From contig OZ038378.1 of the NCBI GenBank assembly GCA_964036045.1, positions 1,178,001-1,242,000 of the forward strand: a stretch of 64,000 nucleotides of DNA, given 5' to 3'. The position numbers and the translations under genes were made by a program. Positions within the stretch are counted from its first letter, which is position 1; every line of letters starts with the position of its first letter. This document shows positions 30,201-47,009 of the stretch, piece after piece. The DNA comes from Eutreptiella sp. 'Long Island Sound 2002'. Lineage: Eukaryota > Protista > Euglenida. The notes beneath the pieces were generated by a model that worked only from the letters and a program-made list of their open reading frames with translations, was not told where the DNA came from and made no database searches.

Positions 30201-33200
30201 CCAAGTTAGGATGCGCCGGGAATGCACGTTGTCCACATTCACCTTCAAAAGATTGAATAGGTTGTATCCGCACTCTTTTTTTTGTGTTCTCATGTTGGGG
30301 ACCCCGAAGACGGCAGCGGTTATATATCCATTTAGCCCCCGTAAGGGCCATGTAGAAGGTAAGGGTTATGTAGCACCTTTTGGTCTTTTCCATAGTTCGT
30401 TGACCCACAAAACGGCAGTCGTTATCGAACCATTTTTTTGAAATCATGAATTCAGATTTTCATGCCAATCGGATTTGCAATTCCGTTCCACCCTGCATAC
30501 TACTGTATTCGATGTCGAAGAACACCGCTTGTCAGGACAATACCAAGGGGTGTTGTTGCTGCGACTCAACGCTTGTATCATGTTCGGATGGTTAGTTCTT
30601 GATTTGTGCTTGAATCGGATTGGAGGGGGCCATTAGTTGGTCAAGCCACAATGCTTTACAAGCCAGTGCTTGGTCAATAAGCTTTGGCATTACCAAGTTG
30701 GGAGTGCAAACACAAGATTGAAGGGCTGCTTTTGCCATGAAAGGCACACCAAGTCTAGCACTATGAAAGGAACCGATGAGGACGCGGAATGGTTCACCCT
30801 CAAAAGGTCAAGTACCCCCTATAGTCTTAGAAGAACACACACATTGCATCAAATGACAGCCGCGAGAAGGCATGTATTCATGAAATCAAGTAATCTTTCT
30901 ATGGATTTTGTCAGGCGGCATCACAAAAAGGGCAATCCTAGAGTATGCTCCATTCAAGCGTAGTTAGGGCCCAATGGTTTTTTCCATTACCTCTAAGTGC
31001 TAGTATCCCAAGTCCGCTTTTCTAGCTTCCGGGATCTCATCAAGTGGTTGTATGAACTCACACACACTCACATACACGAGTTGAGCGACGTTGTTGTTTT
31101 GCGCCGCCCGGCGGTAGGGAGCGGCCTTCCAAGAATGGATCCTCCAAGCATTCAAACAACATCTTTAAGGTTACGGAGGGCTAATTTTTGGCTTAGGTTC
31201 TAGCTTAAGCTTCCTCCGCTTTACCCGTCCATTGCCCTCCCCGTGACTAGCACGAATTGTGTTTAGAGCTTGCTCTGAAGTGATCTTTTTTCCCTTTGAG
31301 CCGTCGTCCCCTTTTTCCGGGTGCAATTTTCGGCTCATTTTCTAGTTTCTCTTCTTTTTCTTGATTTGGACCTGCGTCCTCACCCTGCACTTCAAGGTCA
31401 CTCAAGTTTTCTTGTTTGTCAACCCAGTCCTCCTGCTCTATTACATCCCCCAAAGGGCCGGCGTGGTGTGGCGATACTTCAAGAGTCCTTGAGATGGCAA
31501 GGCCCATGAAGCCACTTTCGATTCCGTCCCCATTTACGGTACCCCCACTCCAGCAAGGGTAATGTTGCCATTTTGTCCCGATGTGGGCCGCTAAGACAGC
31601 AAGGGTTACGTAGCCACTTTGGCTTTTTCCTAGACTTCGGTAACCGCTAAAAGGGCATGGGTTTATTCAGGTAGACCTCCAAAAACACTAGCGTTGTGTA
31701 AGCCTTTCTGTTTCTTATTGCTGCCACTTGGATTCCCAAGATAGCAAGGGGCGGGCAGCCACGCTGTCCACATCCGCCTTCGAAAGACGGAATGGGTTGT
31801 GTCACTTCTGTTATGTCCCTTTTTTTGGGGCCCCCAAGACCGCAAGGGCGACGGAGCCCATTTCTTCTTGTCCCGTGCTGCCAAAGCATTCAAGGAGATA
31901 GGGGTTGTTCAGACACTTTTGATTCGTTCCCCACTACCGGTGAGCTGTTGATTTTGTGTCCATCCCGGGGATGCCCAAGCCGCAAGGGTTATGTGGCCCT
32001 TTCTTACTCTACCTTGCTTCGGGAGCTTCGAGAATGTAAGGATTATTCAAACCAACTTTGACTCCTTCCCCACTTCGGGTAGCCCCAAATATGGTAGAGG
32101 CTATGTAGCGATTTTGTTTTCATGCCACTTTCGGGATCCCCAAGGCGGCAGTGGTTATGTAGCTAATCGCCCACATATGGGCCCCCAAAATGATAGGGTT
32201 GACTGGCATATTGGACCTTGTTGCAACCTTCAATATCCAAGACAGTAAGCGCCGGGCAGCCAAGATGTCCACATCCACCTTCAAAAGACCGAATAGGTTG
32301 TGTCGGCGCTTTTTACTTTTTGTTCCCATGTTGGGGACCCCGAAGACGGTAGCTGCTATGCAGCATTTTGCTCTTTTCCAGAGTTCGCGGACCCGCAAAC
32401 AGAAAATGTCACGGAACCATTTTTTTTGGGTCGTGTGTGGGGAGTGTCATGCCGATGAGATTTGCAATTTTGTTCCAACCTGTATACTTCTGTATGCCAT
32501 TTCCAACAACACCGCTTTTGATGACATTACCACAGGGTGTTGTTGCCGCGACTCAACGCTTCTATGATATTCGGATGGTTAGTTCTCGATTTGTGGTTGA
32601 ATCGGATCGGAGGGTGCTAGTAGTGGATTAAGCCACAATGCTTTCCAAGCCACTTCTTACTTACTAAGGCTTGACATTACCAAGTTTGGGAGTGCAAACA
32701 CAGGATTGAAGGGCTCCTTTTGCCATGAAAGGCACACCACATTTGGCACTATGACTTAGGCGTCACAAGTTGCCCAACCTCTAGGACCCCGTATACGCGC
32801 GATTTGACAATATTCTACATTTCTACTTTGAGTATGTTATTTGGGGTATGTGACCAAAGTTGTTGGCAGAGCTGTGTGACACCCGTTGAAATACGTGTTG
32901 ATGTGTTAGCCTTGTGTATCCCCGTCTTCTAGTGTGTTGTATTTGACGCTTTTCTGAAGCTGGCCGAAATTTCGGCCAGGTTTTGGGTAACATTGCAAAC
33001 AAGTATGTGTATATGCGGTTTTTGACCCTTCTGGCCGAAATTTCGGCCAGCTTTTTGGTTTCCTGGTGAATAGGCATAGTTATTTTCATTTTTCCTAGGG
33101 CTGGCCGAAATTTTGGCCAGCTTTTTGGTCTGTTCACTATTCAAGCACTTATATTCTGGTTTTTGGGCGGTCTGGCCGAAATTTCGGCCAGCTTTTCCTA

Positions 33201-33286
33201 TTGTTGAACATTTAAGCAATTATTTCCCCTTTGAACACACCTGGCCGAAATTTCGGCCAGCTTGCAATTGTCGTTGTTCATGAGTA

Positions 33287-35543
33287 TTGCACCATACACT
33301 CCTACATAACTGCTTTCTTGTCTCAGCATTAATGTCTTCTGCTATTACTGTCAATGTTGTACATGCTGCAGTTACTGGTGCTTTTGCTACTACAGCCAAA
33401 GGGCTGTTGCGAAATGCATTACGTGGTGGGACTCTGCAAAAGCTTTTGCAATTCTGCCTCTTGTTGCGGAAGAATCGCAGGAGCCGGCACTCCCTGACAC
33501 AGTTGAAGGCCGCCGCCACTGAGAAGAAGCTTCCACGATGGTACATGACATTTTTGTCACAGTTCCATGCCCTATACTGCCTGCTGCGCCGTATGGCCCT
33601 CCCATACTCTAACTGTGGGTCTGGTTACAACTGGGGTATTATGTCCTGCCGCCAACGCCGTAAGGTAGGAGTCCTTGGTCAGTGTAACACTAAGCAGGAG
33701 TCCATTCACCATCGTGCTGGACTAGCAGCACACAACTTGTGGAACACCATGCACCGTAGGCAAGTTTGTATATGGTTTGATAACCTGAGGCGTTACAGGT
33801 CGGGAGCTGATCCCCATTCACCCGACTTAACCCTAGACTGTACAGCTGTTGCTGTTTTGCACACTACTGCCCTACCTGCATACCGGGGTCTGCAGGAGCT
33901 GGCCGAAATTGAGGCCAGGGTACCAAAGGTTGCTGATGACATCTTTCGCTCACATAGAGCATTGTTTGATCGTATTGATGTTGCCAACCAAGGTATTCAG
34001 AGAGTTTGGGTTCGTGCTCCTTTGGATATTGCCAGAAAAAATGTTCGTTCCCTCAACTGGAGACCCTTTTTCCTGTCTGAGCTCCGCTCCGGCACACACA
34101 AAGAGCTTTTGCAACTCGTGGTTGATTTGTCATGTGTGGAACACCGCACCAGACACTGTGTTCCGCTGCTTGTGGACATGAAAATACACTTTGCCCTACT
34201 TAAGCTGTGTTATGGTGCTGCTTATGTTCCCTGGAATGTACCACAATTACTGTTGGGTTTTCCTTTGGTGTACGGAGTATGGCATAGCTATAAGTATTGC
34301 GTTGAATTGATCTACAGGGCGTTCCTGCCGTTCATTAAGTTTTTGGAGCAGGGGAACAGCCTTCAGGTTGGGTCTATCCTCCCTCGCAAGGTCAAGGTCA
34401 TCCGTATGGAGAAGACGTTGCTTGGACTCATGCTAGCCACATCGTCCAATAGAGGCAGACTAGATGAGCGCGTCACTTCCCTGCTCGATAGCCAGCGGTA
34501 CTTGACACCCATTCAGCGCAAGGGTTTGCGTATGTTATTAGCCCTTAAGGCTTTGCTGTACACATACTGTCCAGCTGCTTTCAGCATTGGGACTTTGGTT
34601 CGTGAGTGCAACTGGGAGGGACGGGGGGCAGGTTCCGGTATTGTAGCTAAGCAGGCACTTGAGATGTCCCTACTGCTCATGCTGAACATCCTAAAGCCCG
34701 AGGAACAGCTAACCACGGAGTATGTGCAAACCACCGTTGTTGCTCTTTTGTTTTGGAGTCAGTGGCATTCCGCCTCCCTAGGGTGTATCCACTCTGAGGA
34801 GCTGGGTGAGGCACTTCTGAGTCGGTTCTCAGCCCACTGTCGCCGCAACACTGCCTGTACTAGTGTCCAACAGTCGTCTGATTTATTTCTGACACTTCCC
34901 CCTGTATAACCGGGAGAGAAAGTTTTGCGTGGTGTGCTGACTGAGAGATCCGTGGCAATGTTCTCTGCCAATCTTAAACAATTCATCTTGACAGCCCATA
35001 CACAGAGCCTGCCCATTTGTGTTCCCGTTCCGGACTATAAAGTTGAGGTGAGAAGACTGGATGCAGTTGAGGATTTGACATTCCCCGGTACCATGTCTAG
35101 GACACGAATCACCACAGACCGTTTAAAAGTGGTTCTGTTGCATGCAATGCAAAATCTGGTTGCGCGTACAAGGGTTCTTGAGGGTGTTGAGGATTTTTTA
35201 CAGACAAATGCACCTGCCCGCACTGCTGCCGAGCAAGGGGTGTTGCGTACTGCACATGCTTCTATTCGCGCTGCCAACCGTGCACCGCCTGCTGCTGCTG
35301 CTGCTGCTCCTGGTGGAATTGCCTTGCCCCCAAAGCCCCCCCCGAAGCCCCGAGCCAGAGGCCCCCCAGTACCCCCCCCGGCCCCCCCCCCGCCCAGTAC
35401 CCCCCCCCGCCCCTGATGATTCCATTGCTGTCGACTCTTGTGATAGTGACCAGGATATTGATTGTGATGCAGACAGCGTTGCCTCCTTTGAAGCCCTAGA
35501 TGAGGCGGAACACATCGGTGTGGATACCCACGACTGGGACTGA
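33287..35543 (+). pseudogene. ORF1: putative RNase H-fold DDE transposase, interrupted
   Basis: A 540-codon ORF continues in the same frame past a single TAA (34907-34909) to 35416; a probable poly-C frameshift then leads to an acidic tail ending at 35543. Candidate catalytic motifs: IWFDN (D 33779), LLVDMKIH (D 34175), YGVWH (H 34283) and HSEELGEALLS (~34796-34810). Family assignment is inference. The ATG may be at 33332. Confidence 0.65.
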
Positions 35544-35913
35544 TTTCTGTTTGCAGCTGTGTTTGTCACTGTGGTATGGGTTCTGCCACACATTGCCAGT
35601 GATTTTGGTGTGTCTATTTGCTGTTTCATGTTTTTTTGGCCGAAATTTCGGCCAGACTTGTTGTTTTGTCATATGGCTACCCCCAGAACACAAATGACTT
35701 AAGGTTCTGGCCGAAATTTCGGCCAGCCTCTCTGAATGGTATTTGTACACAGTGGTTTGACATGCAGAGCAGTGCTGGCCGAAATTTCGGCCAGGTTATC
35801 CGAATTTCCTGTCAGGCAGTCCGTTTTGGTCCTTTTTTGGTTGATCTGAGCTTGTTATTTGCTATCTCGGAACTCTCCCCTTCATGAAATGTTGCCCTGT
35901 AGCCCTTTATTTT

Positions 35914-38500
35914 ATGACTGAGCCTGGAGGGGTATCACAGGACATGGCTGTTTCGCCAGATGGTGAGCCTGCAGCAGACAATGGGCAATCTCAAGTGCAA
36001 TCCCAGTCTCAAGAGGACCAGGCGAGCACAGAGGGACTTCAAAAGAAGCCTAAGGCCGCACCAAAGAAAAATTCATCATCCTCCATCAAGTTATCCGACT
36101 GGGTTACGTCAACGACGAAAATAAAGGTTCGGTGGGATCAGATGATTATCGACCACGACCGAAAATTTGGGCAGGTCCGTAGGATTTCGGATGATCGCGT
36201 GCAACGCCGCTACGACGATCTGAAGGCAGCCCCGCCTGTGGATTACATCCAGGATCTTCTTTTTTATAAAGTCACTGGTATGTGTGTTGTGGTATTCTTC
36301 TCGATAGTACCGTTTTCGCGTCTGAATTTCGACCCTGCTGTTACGAATATTCCTGTTGCACAGCCACTCGCTGGGTTCTGTTGGGGGGTCAGCATGTTTA
36401 CACTGCTGCCCAAAAACACAAGACCGAATTTGAGATGAAAAATATGGAGACTCCGGATTGGACCCTGGTATTTGGTGGTTATGAAGTCAAACAGGACTGC
36501 CCCCTGCGGAATAGGCGCCGGCTTGCAGGCTTACATCAAATCCAGACCACTGCTGGCTCAGCCTCCACCACATCGGAGCGAATGTCCCTACTCCTGGATA
36601 GGCTTGAGGATGAGGATGCCAATGAGTACACCCTGTACCATCAGATTACTGTTATGCTTGAAGAATGTGGTGTTACTGCCGAGGAAGGCACTGTGGTGTG
36701 TTTCGTTTATTAATTCGGTTTTGTCGATCGACCTGGCCGAAATTTCGGCCAGCTTCTGTGTTCCACATGTTCTCCTGTGCAGAGTGCTATTGCCAAACGG
36801 TGGGGTGGCGTTGGGCGTTTGGTGAAATTTGTGGGTCTTCCTTCAGTAGACGCCATGGCAGCCATGGAAAAGCGTGGACTACATCCCGCATTGGGTACGT
36901 TCAAGGAAGTGGAAGGCATCACGCCTGACCGACTTCGCCAGATCGTAGGTTACAGGGATGGGACAAAAAGTACCCTACCTGGTCTCAAAAAAATTATAAA
37001 AGATGTTAAAAAGGCCCAGATGTGGTCCTGGCACATTCTTCATCCCGAGGCGGTTACCAATGGGCTTGTGAACAACACCAGAGGTATGTTTTGGTCAAAC
37101 AGGGGTTTGTATTCGAATAAATTGACCGACCTGGCCGAAATTTCGGCCAGCTTGTGTGTCGTTCAATTAATGCACAATAGGAGCCCACCCTGTGCTACCA
37201 CCTGTCTGCAGCTACACTTGGTACTATCGAGATGGCCAAAAGGCAGTGCGCTATTGCATCACACGTGAAGGTAGCCTATGGCAGTTGGACCTGGACTAAA
37301 GAAAACCCCTGGCCCCCGTGGTCAGCAGTAATTAAGGCCCCTCTTTGGAAGGAACCCAAATATGAGGGGTTGCGGGGATTGTTGCAGAAGCCTATTGCTA
37401 AGCCTGTTTGTGAAAAATCTGATACTGGTCTGGTCAGTATCTAGTGTGCTAGGGAGTCCCTCGTTGAGTCAAGCACAGGCAAACTCATTGCAGAGTCATG
37501 CCGTGTGGAACCGATGGCAATGCGTTGTGGAGTCCCTGTTCCCAGTATCATTAGTTCACTGCCCTTTGCTGCTTGTGTCATTGAGGTGCCCCGCCTCTAT
37601 ACAGCTGGTTTGCATAACCTGGTTGCGCAGCTGCCTTTGTCCGGTGTGCCTGTGTTCATTGCGGGTGAGTCTGCTGATGTGAAAGCCACTGTTGCTGCTT
37701 TGAAGGCCACTGTGGCTGAGGACATGTATCAGTGTGATGTTGCAATTTACAATTTGTCAAGCAAGACCCCGCTGTACACTTCTACGTCCCATCTTGTTTC
37801 CATTTGTTCTGCCACTGCCTTTGATAACAGGCTGCCCCGTTACGTGGCTTTTACTGAAGGACCCATGTCGTCGGTGATGCCTGTTGAAATATTCTTATTT
37901 CTTTTGAGCCTGGTTCCGGTCCCAGAACGGGCAGGCAACTGGTTTTTGCTGGGGACTCTGTCTGTGTATTTTGCAAGCATGATGTCTACCAGGTTTTCCA
38001 AGGACTGTAATGTTGTGTGTCCCCTTTTGGGTGAGGAGACTGTTGTGCCCGATGACTGTGTTCAGCTCATCAGAGCAGGTATCACCAACGCCGACACGTG
38101 CCCCCCCAAGTTATGGGAGGATGTGTACCACGACTTGGGGGCAGGTTTTCCTGTGGATTGTTCTGGGGTTAGGTATGCAGATGAGGATCCTGAGGAGCAA
38201 GATGGGGAGGCAGAGTCGCAACCAGAGACACACACTCCAAAGAAGAAACCCAAAACTGCCCCTGCCCCCTCACCCAGTGGCACGCAGTGCGCTCAGGCCA
38301 CCCCAGCTTCCTCCTCAGGCACTGTTGCCCCTAGTGGCAAAGGTATGAATACTTTTGTGAATCATTTTTCACCATCCCAGGGTGGAAACACACAGTCACA
38401 GAACTCTGCCACTGCCAAGTCTGGTGCTGCAGCCCCTGCCAAGCCTCCTGCTAACACAGGTGCTAAGAAGCCCCGTGCATCTGGTCTGCGCAAGCGCTAA
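35914..38500 (+). pseudogene. ORF2: spliced gene with ParB-like N-terminal domain and possible degenerate methyltransferase-like C-terminal region
   Basis: Exons 35914-36277, 36364-36695, 36783-37067 or 37083, and 37181-38500; introns 1 and 2 are GT-AG and phase-consistent, intron 3 phase is unresolved. Splicing assembles KFGQVRRISDDRVQRRYDDLK...ATRWVLLGGQHVYTAAQK. One in-frame TAG lies at 37442-37444; the C-terminus is Lys/Pro/Ala-rich. Confidence 0.6.
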
Positions 38501-40485
38501 TGCCAGTCCTGCTGCTTATATTGCCTGTTAGCATGAAGTCTGGCCGAAATTTCGGCCAGCATGTAGTCCTCAGCCTCTTCAGCCTTTTATTATTGTGTTT
38601 CCCCATAGGCACTGCAAAAGTCTGCTTTGATTCGTCAGGTGGCAAGTATTTGCTTGTAATTGAGTATATTATGTTGCACACCCTGTTCAAATGTCACTGC
38701 TCCTGTGTTCCTTGCTCATGTCTACTGTCTTAGGTACCCATTTCAGTGATCATATTCGGAGTTTCGATGGACCTGGCCGAAATTTCGGCCAGCTTAGGCT
38801 TGTCTGTCAAATAGGACCATGTGTTTGGACATTTTTCGAAGAGTTGGCCGAAATTTCGGCCAGGTTGGTTGAAATAGGAAATACAAGTACATGCTTTGGG
38901 ATAGTTTTCTGTGTGCTTCAATGTAAGGTATGTTTGGGGTTCCCTCATCTGTGGTGTATAGGGGGGTTCTGTGATCAACCTCGAACAAAGGGGAGAGAAA
39001 AATAGGCAGCCCCCCCCCCCCACACACACACTGGAATGCAGTGGTCTAAATGTGAAACAACACTATATTTTGGTGATTGAATGTCTTTATTTTGAAAATC
39101 TGTGTGTTTCCAGAAATGCAAATAATGGCATATATTTGAAATACACACCTTGTTTTTGCATGTTGCCACAGGGGGGTTAGGGTACCCAAAAAATAACACC
39201 CCTTTTCACATACTTTTCCCCTCATTACAACATGGACTTCCGTGGGCCATAGCGCCCGGTGGGGGGTGGGCAACTTGTGACGCCACAGTATGAAAGGAAG
39301 GGTTGAGGCCGCAGAATGGTTCACCCTGAAAAGGTCAAGTGCCCCTGCAATGGTACAAGAACACAGCCATTGCAGCAAATAACAGCGGGAAGAAGGCATG
39401 TATTCATGAAATCAGCAATATTTCTATGGATTACGTCGAGCTGCATCACAGAAAGGGCAGCCTTAGAGTATGAGCCATTGAAGGATAGTTAGGGGCCAGT
39501 AGTTTTTCCCATTACCTCAGAGAGTCCGTACCAAGTCCTCTTTTCTAGCTTCCGGGATGTCCTCAAGTAGTTGTCTGAATTGGCACACACACGTACGCTA
39601 CTTGAACCACTTTGCTGTTTTGAGCTGCCCGGCGTTAGGGAGCGGCCTTCGAGGAATGCATCCTCCAAGCATTTCAACGGCATCTTGCAGGTTGCGGAGG
39701 CTAAGACGGCAGGGATTATTTACCAATTTCGCTTTCGCCAATACTTCGGCGAACCCCAAAAGGTCATGGGTTATCTAGCTAGACCTACAAAAACACTAGC
39801 GTTGAGATAGCCTTTCTGATTTTCTTGCTATGGCTGGGATCCTCAAGATAGGAAGGGGTGGTTAGCCACGCTGTCCACCTTCCAAAGATGGAACAGGTTG
39901 TGTGACTTCTGTTGTGTCCCCCACTTTGGGCCCCCCAAGACCGCAAGGGCGACGGAGCCCATTTCTTCTTGTACCGTGTTGCAAGAGCCCCTAAGGAGAT
40001 AATGGTCATGTAGCCACTTTTGATTTGCTCCCCACTTCCGGCACCCGAAGACGGAAGGGGTTGTTTAGGCATTTTGCCCACATGTGGGCTCCCCAGACGG
40101 CAAGGCGCGGGTAGCAGTTTTGATTTTGTCCCCATGTAGGGGACACCCAAGATGGCAAGTCCACTACTGCTACGTTTTCCTCCCTTTATCCCCCTCGAAC
40201 CGCAAGCGTGTTGTGGCCATTTCTTACTCCATCCTCCTTGGGTGCCTTTGAGAAGGCAAGGATTGTTTGGCCAACTTTGATTGCTTCCCCACTTCGGGCA
40301 CCCCTAAGAGGGTAGGGGCTATGTAGCCATTTTCGATCATGTTCCACTTCGGGAACGCCAAGACGGTAGGAGCTATGTAGCCATTTTTGATTATGTTCCA
40401 CTTAGGGGACCCCCAAGTAGGTAGGGGTTATATAGCCTATTGCCCACATATGGTCTTTCAAAGGGGTAGGGTCGTCTTGTCATAT

Positions 40486-43900: not shown

Positions 43901-45263
43901 TGTCCAAGCTTTCGCTCATTTTCTACTTCCTCTTCTTGCAGCGTTGCGTCCTCATCCTGCTCTTTAAGGTCATTCAAGTCTTCTTGTTCTTAAGCTTGCG
44001 CTCCTTCTCCACTTCATGCCCCAAAGGGGAGGCGTGGTGTGGCCATGTTTCATTGCTCTGTGCTGCAAGACCCTTTGTAATGGCAAGGGCTGTGAAGCCA
44101 CGTTCGATTCCCCCCCCATTTACCATACCCCCATTCTAGCAAGCATAATGTAGCCATTTTGTCCGAATGGGGGCAACTAAGACGGCGGGGGTGATGTAGC
44201 CAGTTTCGCTTTTGCCTACATTTGGGTGACCCCCATAAGCTCATGGGTTATTCAGCCAATTGCCCACATTTGGACCCCAAAAAACACTAGCGTTGTCTAA
44301 GCTATTCTGATTTCGTTGCTCATTCCGGGGTTCCCAAGATACGAAGGGGTGCGTAGGCACGTTGTCCACATCCGCCCTCCAAAGACGGAATGGGTTGTGT
44401 CACTTTTGTTCTGTCTTGAGTTTGGGGTCCCCAAAGACCGCAAGGGCGAGGGAGCCCATTACTGCTCGTACCGTCCTGCAAGATCCTTCAAGGAGAAAGC
44501 ACTTATGTAGCCACTTTCGATACCCTTGCTTCCCTTGCTTTCGGTCTGCCGTTTGAGGCCTGGAATATCGATGAACGAATTTTTGCACTCTGCATCTCCG
44601 CAATCCCCGGGGTGTTGCGGGCGAGGAACTAATTGAGCCAAGTTGTTATCTTGAGCTGCCGCCGGCTAGGTCAGCTTAGGAGGAATACATTCTCCAAGAC
44701 TATCAATGGCATTGCACAAGCCATTGATAGCTGCTCTTTGGTTTGCCTCCTGCTCAAGCCTCTTCCGCTTTGCCCGTCAATCACTCTCCCTGTGGCTGCG
44801 ACAAATTGCGTCCCGAGCCTGCTCCCCAGTGTACTCCTTCCCTTTGCATAGCCTTCCTTTCTTTGGAGAAATATTTTGCGGCTGAGCCGGTTGTTCCTGC
44901 TCTTGCTCCTCTTCGTGCCCGTCATCCTCATTCTCTTTGTCAATTGCATGACAGGGTTTGTGTAGGCATTTTGCCCACATGTGCACCTAGGTAGATGGCA
45001 AGGATTTTGTGGCCACACTTCGGGGACCCGCAAGACCACGGGGGGCGCTCCTGGTCAGGTCCCGACCCCAGGGGGGGGGGGGGGGGGGGGGGGGGCTCTA
45101 CGGACCCCAAAATTGTCGCACGGAACAAGGTGCTTTGTCGGCGCCGGAGATTTTGTTTTAGGCTTACGGGAGGGGGAATTTTTCTTGTTCCACCCTATGT
45201 GTCTATACTCAAAATACTCACAATTTTGTGGAGAATTCAAAAATGACTAAAAAGAACAATGTC

Positions 45264-46064
45264 GCCACATTGCCCACGTTGTGGGCCACTTCTGATTTAG
45301 TCCCCCACTCTGAGGCGGAGGGGCTCCCTCAGACGGCAGGGGTTAAGTAGCCACATTGCCCACGTTGTGGGCCACTTCTGATTTAGTCCCCCCGCTCTGA
45401 GGCGGAGGGGCTTCCCGAGACGGCAGGGGTTAAGTAGCCACATTGCCCACGTTGTGGGCCACTTCTAATTTAGTCCCCCCGCTCTGAGGCGGAGGGGCTC
45501 CCCGAGACGGCAGGGGTTAAGTAGCCACATTGCCCACAAGTGGGCCACTTCTGATTTAGTCCCCCCGCTCTGAGGCGGAGGGGCTCCCCGAGACGGCAGG
45601 GGTTAAGTAGCCACATTGCCCACGTTGTGGGCCGCTTCTAATTTAGTCCCCCCGCTCTGAGGCGGAGGGGCTCCCCGAGACGGCAGGGGTTAAGTAGCCA
45701 CATTGCCCACGTTGTGGGCCGCTTCTAATTTAGTTCCCCCGCTCTGAGGCGGAGGGGCTCCCCGAGACGGCAGGGGTTAAGTAGCCACATTGCCCACAAG
45801 TGGGCCACTTCTGATTTAGTCCCCCGCTCTGAGGCGGAGGGGCTCCCCGAGACGGCACGGGTTAAGTAGCCACATTGCCCACGTTGTGGGCCACTTCTGA
45901 TTTAGCCCCCCCGCTCTGAGGCGGAGGGGCTCCCCGAGACGGCAGGGGTTAAGTAGCGACATTGCCCACGTTGTGGGCCACTTCTGATTTAGTCCCCCCG
46001 CTCTGAGGCGGAGGGGCTCCCCGAGACGGCAGGGGTTAAGTAGCCACCTCGCCCACGTTGTGGG
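45264..46064. repeat. Homogeneous 85-87-bp tandem array, nine full units plus a partial unit
   Basis: Unit starts at 45264, 45350, 45437, 45524, 45610, 45697, 45784, 45869, 45956 and 46043; units are nearly identical. Confidence 0.95.
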
Positions 46065-46145
46065 TTTCGTTGTGGGTTTCGTTGCACCAACTGCAACGGT
46101 GGAGAGGTTGTGGCAGCTCTCGCTGAACGACATTGAACAACTTTT

Positions 46146-47009
46146 TTGATGTATGTCCCCTTGCCAAAGGCAGTGCCGCTTGTGCCATATGCGGCGTTGG
46201 GTTGTGCTCAATACCGTGAGCAGCTGCGGAATGCTCCGGGAGCAAAGCGCATGCCTTGCCCTTTTCCGAATTGTGACCGATTTTTCATGCACGCTTCAAT
46301 GCGCCCGCATATTGCTGGGCATTTTTTGCGAGGCCATAGGTGGGCCGGCCAAGAGGGTGCGGATAAAGGCGCATTTTGCTTGTGGTGTGGCAAGACAGAT
46401 GGCAAGTGCAGCACAAGTGTGCACGGCAAGAAAATTGACAGCAATTGCAGTCTTGCGTACCATCGGCTACGGCTAAACAGCGCGGCAACCCCAACAGCGA
46501 TGAACCCTAGCACCAACTTGCCAGTTCGCTGCAAGGTGCTTGATTGCCGAAAATGCCATTGCACCTACGCCATGCCACACCACATGGCACAAGCGCACCC
46601 TGGTGTGTCCCATGACTATGCCGGGTGCAGCGAAGAGGAGAAAACAAAGGTGTTGCAAGCCTTTGACAATTTCCGGGCCCCATTGCCACCGAAGGCGAAG
46701 CCTCCTGCGCCGCCGGCTCTGCCCACTGTTCTCCCTGCTCTTCTCTCTGGGCCAAACCAAGGTAGTAGTAGCAGTGTCTGTAGTAGTAGCAGTAGCTCGT
46801 CCACCAATGCCTCCTCCAGTACGAGTGCATCATCTAGCAGTAGTGCCCCATCAGCCACTAGTGACTATGTGCCATCGGAATCCATGTCTGATGGGCCGGC
46901 AGCCTGCCGGGTCACAAGAGCACAAGCAGCCCGGCCAAAGAAGCGTGCTCGCCCCAAGAGTACCGGCAAGAGGGCACGCGACGAGTGGGAGGATGATTCC
47001 GATGCTTGA
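46146..47009 (+). CDS. Cys/His zinc-finger-like protein with Ser-rich and basic tail, probably 5'-truncated
   Basis: CPFPNC...MRPHIAGH, CLWCG..DGKC, NC, and TNLPVRCKVLDC...MPHHMAQAH. A frameshifted N-terminal extension (VERLWQLSLNDIEQLF) lies across the T-run at 46142-46147. No introns. Confidence 0.6.
   Translation: MMYVPLPKAVPLVPYAALGCAQYREQLRNAPGAKRMPCPFPNCDRFFMHASMRPHIAGHFLRGHRWAGQEGADKGAFCLWCGKTDGKCSTSVHGKKIDSNCSLAYHRLRLNSAATPTAMNPSTNLPVRCKVLDCRKCHCTYAMPHHMAQAHPGVSHDYAGCSEEEKTKVLQAFDNFRAPLPPKAKPPAPPALPTVLPALLSGPNQGSSSSVCSSSSSSSTNASSSTSASSSSSAPSATSDYVPSESMSDGPAACRVTRAQAARPKKRARPKSTGKRARDEWEDDSDA

Follow-up and report, generated by a model that had tools for sequence, protein, structure and literature searches.

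A high-copy DNA transposon family of the euglenid Eutreptiella with a predicted DDE transposase, a putative ParB/sulfiredoxin-fold accessory protein and element-confined palindromes

En/Spm (CACTA) transposons encode a transposase and a second, DNA-binding protein (the TnpA/TnpD pair), the latter recognising clustered subterminal motifs and helping to join the element ends. Here we analysed an element that is similar in encoding a transposase and a second protein and in carrying short repeated subterminal motifs. It is located at positions 32755-39288 of a 64,000-nucleotide (nt) stretch of DNA from Eutreptiella sp. 'Long Island Sound 2002' (Euglenida; assembly GCA_964036045.1, contig OZ038378.1, positions 1,178,001-1,242,000 of the forward strand); this stretch is referred to as the window, and all coordinates follow its numbering, position 1 being contig position 1,178,001. 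The proteins are unrelated to those of En/Spm, which further differs in its 3-bp target site duplication (TSD), its CACTA termini and in producing both proteins from one alternatively spliced transcript. The element, a 6,534-bp insertion within a satellite unit, belongs to a cut-and-paste DNA transposon family that is present in many copies in this euglenid genome; the copy analysed here was inserted recently and is now defective. Its identity as a transposon is secure, and we consider it probable that the explanation holds as a whole, i.e. that, in addition, its first open reading frame (ORF1) encodes a DDE enzyme and the product of its second gene (ORF2) is the partner of a palindrome repeated within the element.

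Accessory proteins of this kind have been described in algae. In the red alga Bostrychia the Plavaka protein PAG3 combines a ParB-like N-terminus with a 2-oxoglutarate (2OG) oxygenase domain, tandem inverted repeats lie beside its gene, and its authors proposed that it binds its own element (bioRxiv 10.1101/2025.02.11.637652). Sola1-1_Ec32 of Ectocarpus carries a gene for a ParB-like protein with a DNA methyltransferase domain, for which binding to the own element was proposed as well, and similar ParB-like cases are cited in green and red algae (PMC12477816). Like these, the euglenid element is a cut-and-paste element with a second gene whose product has a predicted ParB-type N-terminus, and the inverted-repeat arrays beside the gene in algal Plavaka have their counterpart in 14 palindromes confined to the element. 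The algal transposases, however, belong to the Plavaka/EnSpm and Sola1 lineages, unlike ORF1, and in the algal proteins a 2OG oxygenase or DNA methyltransferase domain can be recognised, while the C-terminal half of the ORF2 product has no match. As ParB-like accessory genes with inverted-repeat arrays have already been published for algal transposons of other superfamilies, the novelty of the present element is tempered; what appears to be new, compared with the algal cases, is the transposase lineage, the termini and the TSD length, the presence in a euglenid, an accessory protein in which no catalytic domain is recognisable, and the occurrence of palindromes at both subtermini and also in ORF2 introns.

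The original prediction, made from the letters of this stretch, had reported exact element ends, a 22-bp terminal inverted repeat (TIR), the TSD TATGA and an empty site restorable from neighbouring repeat units. Paired ends are indeed present at 32755 and 39288: the left end reads CTTAGGCGTCACAAGTTGCCCA (32755-32776) and the right end, as reverse complement, CTGTGGCGTCACAAGTTGCCCACC (to 39288), and the 18-bp core of the repeat occurs exactly twice in the 64 kb, 0.06 occurrences being expected by chance. The inverted repeat is real, but it extends beyond 22 bp to ~25 bp, opening with 5'-CTTAGGCG, and is perfect in intact copies of the family (CTTAGGCGTCACAAGTTGCCCACCC). Since the intact copies share this 25-mer, the window copy carries one substitution in the left arm (CTTAGGCGTCACAAGTTGCCCAACC; 32755-32779, + strand) and two at the tip of the right TIR (39264-39288, - strand), which reads CTGTGG in place of CTTAGG. 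A sister family, whose transposase is ~45% identical to that of the window family, has the TIR CTTAGGCCACGCTAACTACCCGCCC, and the termini are 5'-CTTAGG..CCTAAG-3' in both families. TATGA is found on both flanks as predicted, the left copy at 32750-32754 and the matching right copy at 39289-39293, and occurs once only in neighbouring satellite units. Four of the five aligned neighbouring units are unoccupied at the junction and read ...GCAC(T/C)ATGAAAG... across it, with a single TATGA or CATGA, whereas the fifth (47431) diverges at the insertion spot; on the basis of these four units the empty site can be restored and the TSD is exactly 5 bp long. The host DNA (22600-50700) is a satellite of ~2.1-2.3-kb units with many internal 55-100-bp subrepeats and a unit-to-unit identity of ~60-97%, the element lying inside one unit.

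Searching with the ORF1 protein returned 54 clusters, whose members come either from a single ENA genome assembly or from environmental contigs. The closest of these clusters comprises 267 member sequences, and eleven loci surrounding proteins of this kind (L001-L011) were retrieved for comparison. The family is present in many copies at different sites, ~97% identical, and a perfect 5-bp TSD flanks all complete copies (8/8), so that the TSD length deduced from the window copy holds for other insertions. Six of these copies belong to the window family, namely the window copy itself (TATGA; 6,534 bp), L001 (TGACA; 6,947 bp), L002 (ATATG; 97.6% identical over its full length), L007 (CTAGG), L008 (ACCTT; 8.6 kb, with the 3' part apparently threefold) and L009 (TGACA; a 3.3-kb internal-deletion derivative), and two to the sister family (L006, AACGT; L010, TGGTA). 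L003, a distant relative found on a metagenome scaffold of 6,637 bp, is bounded by inverted ends, (AT)CTATGGCGGCCCAAACCGACC, spanning 6,527 bp, its flanks GTAAG and GTATG forming no clean duplication.

Some loci contain further rearrangements. The copy in L008 (L008:6366-15013) is 8,648 bp long, and a ~1,067-bp 3' segment with three palindromes apparently occurs three times in tandem, as judged by palindrome and ORF spacing; the same locus contains the orphan right end of another family copy (L008:947). The deletion derivative in L009 (L009:6507-9770; 3,264 bp) has both ends and its own TSD TGACA and may have been mobilised in trans as a non-autonomous copy, or may have lost DNA after insertion. 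A sister-family copy without detectable right end is located at L005:9847-14152. What appears to be a nested insertion lies directly behind its ORF1: an ORF of 976 residues that weakly matches MULE (PF10551) stands between inverted T-rich GCGTAAGTCGC repeats.

Two long genes on the same strand had been predicted, and both were found. ORF1 is intronless and broken, extends on the + strand from ATG 33332 to TGA 35543 (33332-35543), and corresponds to a protein of ~720-750 residues. The proposed catalytic positions D33779, D34175 and E ~34799/34808 fall on the conserved motifs WFDN (D150; 33779), LVDMK (D282; 34175) and SEELGEA (34793-34813), GVWH being a further conserved motif (34274-34285). 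The in-frame TAA at 34907-34909, which had been treated as a part of ORF1 to be translated through, is a nonsense change (C-to-T) private to the window copy, as copies P0001 and P0002 have Gln at this position and all four sequencing runs read CC at 34906-34907, giving CAA; an explanation of the TAA as tiny intron or site of programmed read-through was rejected on account of this private change. In addition, a frameshift in a poly-C, proline-rich tract (~35370-35400) splits the body of the protein from an acidic C-terminal tail, which is in frame in P0002. We assessed conservation across 50 aligned sequences sharing 20-45% identity with the reference copy, using the numbering of P0002. D180, P239, D241, R244, D291, W326, H327, E369, G429 and R433 are invariant and E498, E499 and E502 are at least 90% conserved, the conserved residues between D291 and E498 including W437 in addition to W326, H327, E369, G429 and R433. 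A profile of twelve relatives retrieved 1,433 cluster representatives with an expectation value (E) <= 0.001 among 1.84 billion proteins, and the ten representatives checked had either no name or that of 'hypothetical protein' and came almost exclusively from short environmental contigs. A sequence profile search of the PDB with the ORF1 alignment yielded noise only.

The original prediction had raised the question of an RNase H fold in ORF1, and the AlphaFold model calculated from the 50-sequence alignment answers it with confidence (predicted local distance difference test (pLDDT) 81.9, predicted template modelling (TM) score 0.77): ORF1 is modelled as RNase H-type DDE fold with a helical insertion domain, D180 being located in core strand 1, D291 just past strand 4 and the glutamates where the helix after the long helical insertion begins. 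The predicted DDE triad was assigned by this element order and by conservation. The model also contains a large N-terminal helical region (residues 17-169). The best solved matches are transposases, Foldseek against the PDB placing Hermes, P element, ISCth4 and Transib on top, and VIA-align giving Z-scores of 10.2 for P element, 9.7 for Hermes, 8.6 for Transib, 7.6 for ISCth4, 7.3 for RAG1 and 5.6 for Mos1; nearly all of the top 33 VIA-align rows are transposases or RAG1. The nearest predicted structures are uncharacterised and DUF6589 proteins of fungi, cnidarians and molluscs. Similarity to DUF6589 was found in the AlphaFold DB (probability 1.00, E 5e-9 to 1e-5), in the ESM Atlas (TM 0.56/0.58 across 540 residues) and with language-model features (0.90, 182/256 shared).

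The ORF1 family is an insertion-domain-group DDE transposon, with DUF6589 proteins as nearest relatives, and it is located outside every superfamily tested, in agreement with the prediction that it fits no recognised superfamily. hAT (Hermes), P element and Transib/RAG1 have in common with ORF1 an RNase H-type DDE core in which a large helical insertion separates the second Asp from the Glu, but ORF1 has no detectable sequence similarity to them. For ORF1 and its relatives no Pfam match to the hAT dimerisation domain (PF05699), BED or THAP was obtained at E up to 10, and the 50-sequence alignment contains no conserved Cys or His pair between D291 and E498 that would correspond to the C(2)C / H(3-4)H motifs of Transib/CMC. 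Transib and the hAT5 lineage generate 5-bp duplications, and the termini of Transib/CMC are 5'-CA..TG-3' (PMC12730594). The 5-bp TSD in 8/8 copies agrees with Transib/CMCT (5 bp; 2-5 bp) and is shared with Transib and hAT5, but the CA..TG termini are absent, both sister families having CT..AG; CTTAGG..CCTAAG is not hAT-like either, and the element differs from hAT and Transib in its extra spliced gene. Termini and motifs thus deviate from what defines Transib/CMC, the domains from hAT, and the TSD length from Academ.

We regard it as rather unlikely that the element is instead a divergent member of a named superfamily. Academ would be the likeliest one if its catalytic domain were DUF6589, for which an overlap of taxa is the only lead, and otherwise the element would be a relative of hAT5 or Transib, as might be suggested by Hermes, P element and Transib being the best solved matches and by the 5-bp TSD of Transib and hAT5. 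Academ proteins carry a nuclease or helicase, whereas ORF1 is without any Pfam domain. Academ has been reported from animals and fungi (PMC10799480), which overlaps with the fungi, cnidarians and molluscs whose DUF6589 proteins ORF1 resembles, but its duplications comprise 3-4 bp (AcademX) or 9-10 bp (AcademH) (PMC10045372) instead of the 5 bp found in all eight copies, and for Transib and hAT the CT..AG termini and the missing dimerisation, BED and THAP matches argue against membership. The Academ/KDZ-like affinity suggested by the original prediction stands insofar as DUF6589 proteins are nearest by shape and by language-model features, but it was not recovered in Pfam, KDZ included: although DUF6589 proteins have the overall predicted fold in common with ORF1, their Pfam model (PF20231) does not match ORF1 or ten relatives at E = 10. 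Our literature search turned up no assignment of DUF6589 to a transposon superfamily, no termini or TSD length for it, and no description of the window transposon family.

ORF2 follows on the same strand (+) and is modelled as four exons separated by three GT-AG introns, a correction of the original prediction. Exon 1 (35884-36277), the start of which is uncertain (35884, 35914 or 35944), codes for a low-complexity N-terminus together with half of the predicted ParB/sulfiredoxin-type domain, namely the first one (with the motif GQVR), and is followed by intron 1 (36278-36363), 86 nt long here and 87 nt in the sequencing runs. Exon 2 (36364-36695) encodes the second half of this domain (WVLLGGQHVYTAAQ) and subsequent helices. 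Intron 2 (36696-36782; 87 nt) and intron 3 (37084-37211; 128 nt), which flank exon 3 (36783-37083), contain one palindrome each (36733-36752 and 37131-37150), and exon 4 (37212-38500) comprises the conserved C-terminal half, a low-complexity basic tail and the TAA at 38498-38500. The joined exons give one 771-codon frame with a single stop, TAG 37442-37444, which is private to the window copy, L002 having CAG. Apart from this exon structure and the nature of the TAA in ORF1, the earlier description of the element is correct. In sum, ORF1 of the window copy is interrupted by a stop and a frameshift, its ORF2 by a further stop, and its right end carries two changes; as neither of its own proteins can be made, the copy would be mobile only with proteins from intact copies.

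Collinear and conserved, ORF2 is located on the same strand after the transposase gene in the window family, the sister family and two distant relatives, L003 and L004, and the position of intron 1 is common to the ORF2 genes of these families, while translation of intron 1 yields a peptide without conservation between the sister families. All four sequencing runs differ by one base after 36326, a position within intron 1, and an interpretation as coding frameshift was rejected for this reason. Direct evidence demonstrates that the ORF2 of a related element is spliced: L011, a 1,034-nt JGI RNA-type contig, equals L004 at 99-100% identity minus two GT-AG segments of ~175 and ~80 nt, the first of which is the intron 1 site, just ahead of (W/F)V(L/I)(G/S)GQH. 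The match of L011:1-170 to L004:3078-3248 begins with the first base, ~17 nt beyond the annotated end of ORF1 (L004:818-3061), and no spliced-leader sequence was recognised at the 5' end of L011, a contig that may be partial. Two metatranscriptome runs were dropped as evidence for splicing because their contigs cross intron 2 and non-coding DNA unspliced, so that these runs may hold DNA or pre-mRNA, and the joints reported in metatranscriptome contigs are repeat-collapse artefacts through palindromes.

The assignment of the N-terminal domain of ORF2 to a ParB/sulfiredoxin-type fold is moderately well supported and comes from structure prediction. MAFFT placed the short ORF2 exon fragments wrongly, and a copy reading through intron 1 was folded rather than the spliced sequence (P0213, residues 45-251). 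In VIA-align the resulting model matched Myxococcus ParB with Z-scores of 6.5 and 6.3 and Noc with 5.2 and 4.8, the next row dropping to 2.6, and a VIA-align pass over 48,161 chains, independent of Foldseek, had pNOB8 ParB-N (5.6), PadC (5.4) and sulfiredoxin (4.8) as top three. KorB, human sulfiredoxin, Atu1540, a free serine kinase and SbnI, the latter three of which we take to be ParB/sulfiredoxin-type folds, also matched across most of the alpha/beta domain, the remaining rows being mostly single-helix matches. ParB/sulfiredoxin proteins are the only domain-length matches, at the top of both passes (Z 4.1-6.5), and the 'ParB-like' nature predicted for the second gene is recovered at the level of the fold (ParB, Noc, PadC, pNOB8), but not by Pfam. 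In the AlphaFold DB the top Foldseek rows, which are non-significant, include ParB/sulfiredoxin proteins and ParB-methyltransferase proteins of Chara. With language-model features the domain adjoins DUF3723 and unnamed eukaryotic clusters (0.96), models of which resemble ParB N-terminal domains, and a ParB_N cluster reaches 0.91 (118 shared); the PDB sequence profile search with the N-terminal alignment gave noise only. ParB proteins are characterised by the boxes QPR and GERRxRAA and sulfiredoxins by the motif GGCHR, and the conserved ORF2 motifs GQ(V/I/T)R and GGQHxxxAA are found at just these positions. The C-terminal half (exon 4) is conserved across the families, but has no Pfam or PDB-profile match and returned noise in the language-model search (0.83); a homologue search with it gave 224 relatives, and none of the 120 listed carries a Pfam domain. 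The notion of a degenerate methyltransferase in this half gained no support from these searches.

A 20-bp palindrome, CTGGCCGAAATTTCGGCCAG, occurs 14 times in the window when up to 2 mismatches are allowed (0.00 expected by chance), all inside the element and none in the 57 kb of flank. Five palindromes form a 5' subterminal array with ~70-bp spacing (32960-33260; at 32960, 33031, 33101, 33172 and 33241), three an intergenic array (35636-35794; at 35636, 35707 and 35775), two are the intronic ones of ORF2, and three are found at the 3' side (38540-38863; at 38540, 38773 and 38844). The last one, a degenerate palindrome with 2 mismatches (33899-33918), is located in the coding sequence of ORF1, where it encodes ELAEIEA; the stretch around it is variable, is deleted in P0002 and coincides with a poorly modelled loop of the P0002 model. 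These positions recur in every family copy, with no palindrome in the flanks except at the orphan element end in L008, and the core is kept exactly while the spacers of the ~70-bp units diverge. In the sister family ~70-bp arrays are present at homologous positions, their consensus CTGGGCGAAATTTCGCCCAG showing a symmetric change at positions 5 and 16, a pattern that fits recognition by a symmetric dimer which would change with the family. L003 has different, GC-rich dyads, some of them within the ORF1 coding sequence; those at L003:1853-1937 give rise to repeats of the peptide RAQARN within a variable insertion-domain loop of ORF1. The palindromes had also been considered as genome-wide introners or elements resembling miniature inverted-repeat transposable elements, which was rejected as in the window they occur only inside the element.

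By analogy with bacterial ParB/parS and Noc/NBS it is reasonable to infer that the ORF2 protein binds these palindromes. The bacterial proteins have an N-terminal fold like that predicted for ORF2, and their ~16-20-bp dyad sites are present in multiple copies confined to the encoding replicon, as are the palindromes to the element. No helix-turn-helix or ParA partner was found here, however, and a bacterial-type segregation is impossible for a nuclear transposon.

Subterminal or internal repeats bind the transposase in Ac, En/Spm, P and Mutator, and the palindromes could likewise be sites for ORF1, ORF2 having an unrelated role, e.g. in chromatin or DNA modification. Eight of the 14 palindromes are arranged in arrays ~500 bp or less from the ends with ~70-bp spacing, which is the classic layout of transposase-binding sites, and the large N-terminal helical region of ORF1 has no role assigned. 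We nevertheless consider this reading unlikely, as five further good palindromes are far from the ends (three intergenic, two in ORF2 introns), a perfect dyad suits a symmetric dimer such as ParB-type proteins, and the inverted-repeat arrays of red-algal Plavaka adjoin ParB-like genes (bioRxiv 10.1101/2025.02.11.637652). Still less probable is that the palindromes have no dedicated protein at all and act as hairpins or cruciforms (terminators, insulators, silencing targets or splicing aids) or represent a spreading minisatellite unit. Tandem units of ~70 bp with diverged spacers, the intronic location of two palindromes, the degenerate palindrome in the ORF1 coding sequence and those within ORF1 of L003 would be compatible with such an origin, but the core remains exact while the spacers drift, and the layout is kept between the sister families despite the symmetric sequence change. 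That ORF2 is a captured host gene without role in the life of the element (Pack-type cargo), as its C-terminal half without recognisable function might suggest, is highly improbable, given the collinear homologues after the transposase gene in the window and sister families, L003 and L004 with their common intron 1 position, and given that every ORF2 homologue found sits in such elements (120 of 224 relatives listed).

Several observations weigh against a DDE transposase acting alongside a palindrome-binding ParB-type partner. As to ORF1, Pfam gave zero matches at E up to 10 for it or the ten relatives scanned, and the catalytic triad is a prediction from element order and conservation. As to ORF2, no spliced joint of the window family's own gene was seen in the metatranscriptomes, the contigs being unspliced through intron 2, so that we infer its splicing. 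The model of the N-terminal domain is weak (pLDDT 60), the ParB Z-scores (5-6.5) are modest when taken as absolute values, Foldseek with this model gave no significant E-value, and neither the ORF2 exons nor read-through copies nor the spliced relative P0223 matched Pfam, including ParB_N (PF02195), at E up to 10. No DNA-binding or helix-turn-helix domain was identified, and the site of the ParB arginine patch reads GGQH(V/S/I)xxAA in all four families. In bacterial ParB the GERR patch is needed for the binding of cytidine triphosphate (CTP); as it is replaced by GGQH, which is closer to GGCHR of sulfiredoxin, a CTP-clamp mechanism is unlikely for ORF2. Finally, the covariation of the palindrome is based on two families, and the copies of the sister family are decayed.

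If ORF1 is the DDE transposase and ORF2 the partner of the palindromes, the ORF1 protein would bind the ends, excise the element and join it into a 5-bp staggered cut, its chemistry using D150, D282 and one glutamate of SEELGEA; a hairpin route may be possible by analogy with hAT, Transib and RAG1. The ORF2 protein would bind the palindromes as a dimer, similar to ParB on parS, and might thereby mark or compact the element's own DNA, and it could help to pair the ends or recruit the activity of its unexplained C-terminal half. We put forward only tentatively, and consider somewhat doubtful, the more far-reaching proposal that the element represents an undescribed superfamily-level lineage, with a DUF6589-type DDE transposase, CTTAG termini and 5-bp TSD, in which family-specific palindromes and a protein of the ParB/sulfiredoxin fold would make up a private self-recognition module whose parts change in step with the divergence of families, i.e. 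a nuclear, transposon-borne counterpart of ParB/parS.

Elsewhere in the window, positions 45215-46167 are occupied by 87-bp tandem repeats, at least 11 in number and 68-97% identical. Estuary, sediment and urban metagenomes and estuary metatranscriptomes (runs X1, X3-X5, X13-X20) contain 13-65% of the sampled element 31-mers (33300-39288), so that the host or a close relative is common in these samples.

Should the family fall outside all named superfamilies, it would place DUF6589-type proteins, which occur widely across fungi and animals without an assigned role, in a transposon context with defined ends, a 5-bp TSD and recent activity. The pairing of a ParB-like protein with inverted repeats, known in red, brown and green algae, would, if confirmed for ORF2, be extended to euglenids and to a different transposase, and such a parallel pairing points to a general mechanism by which transposons may recognise or mark their own DNA. 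The two sister families, with different palindromes at the same positions, provide a clean test of this recognition.

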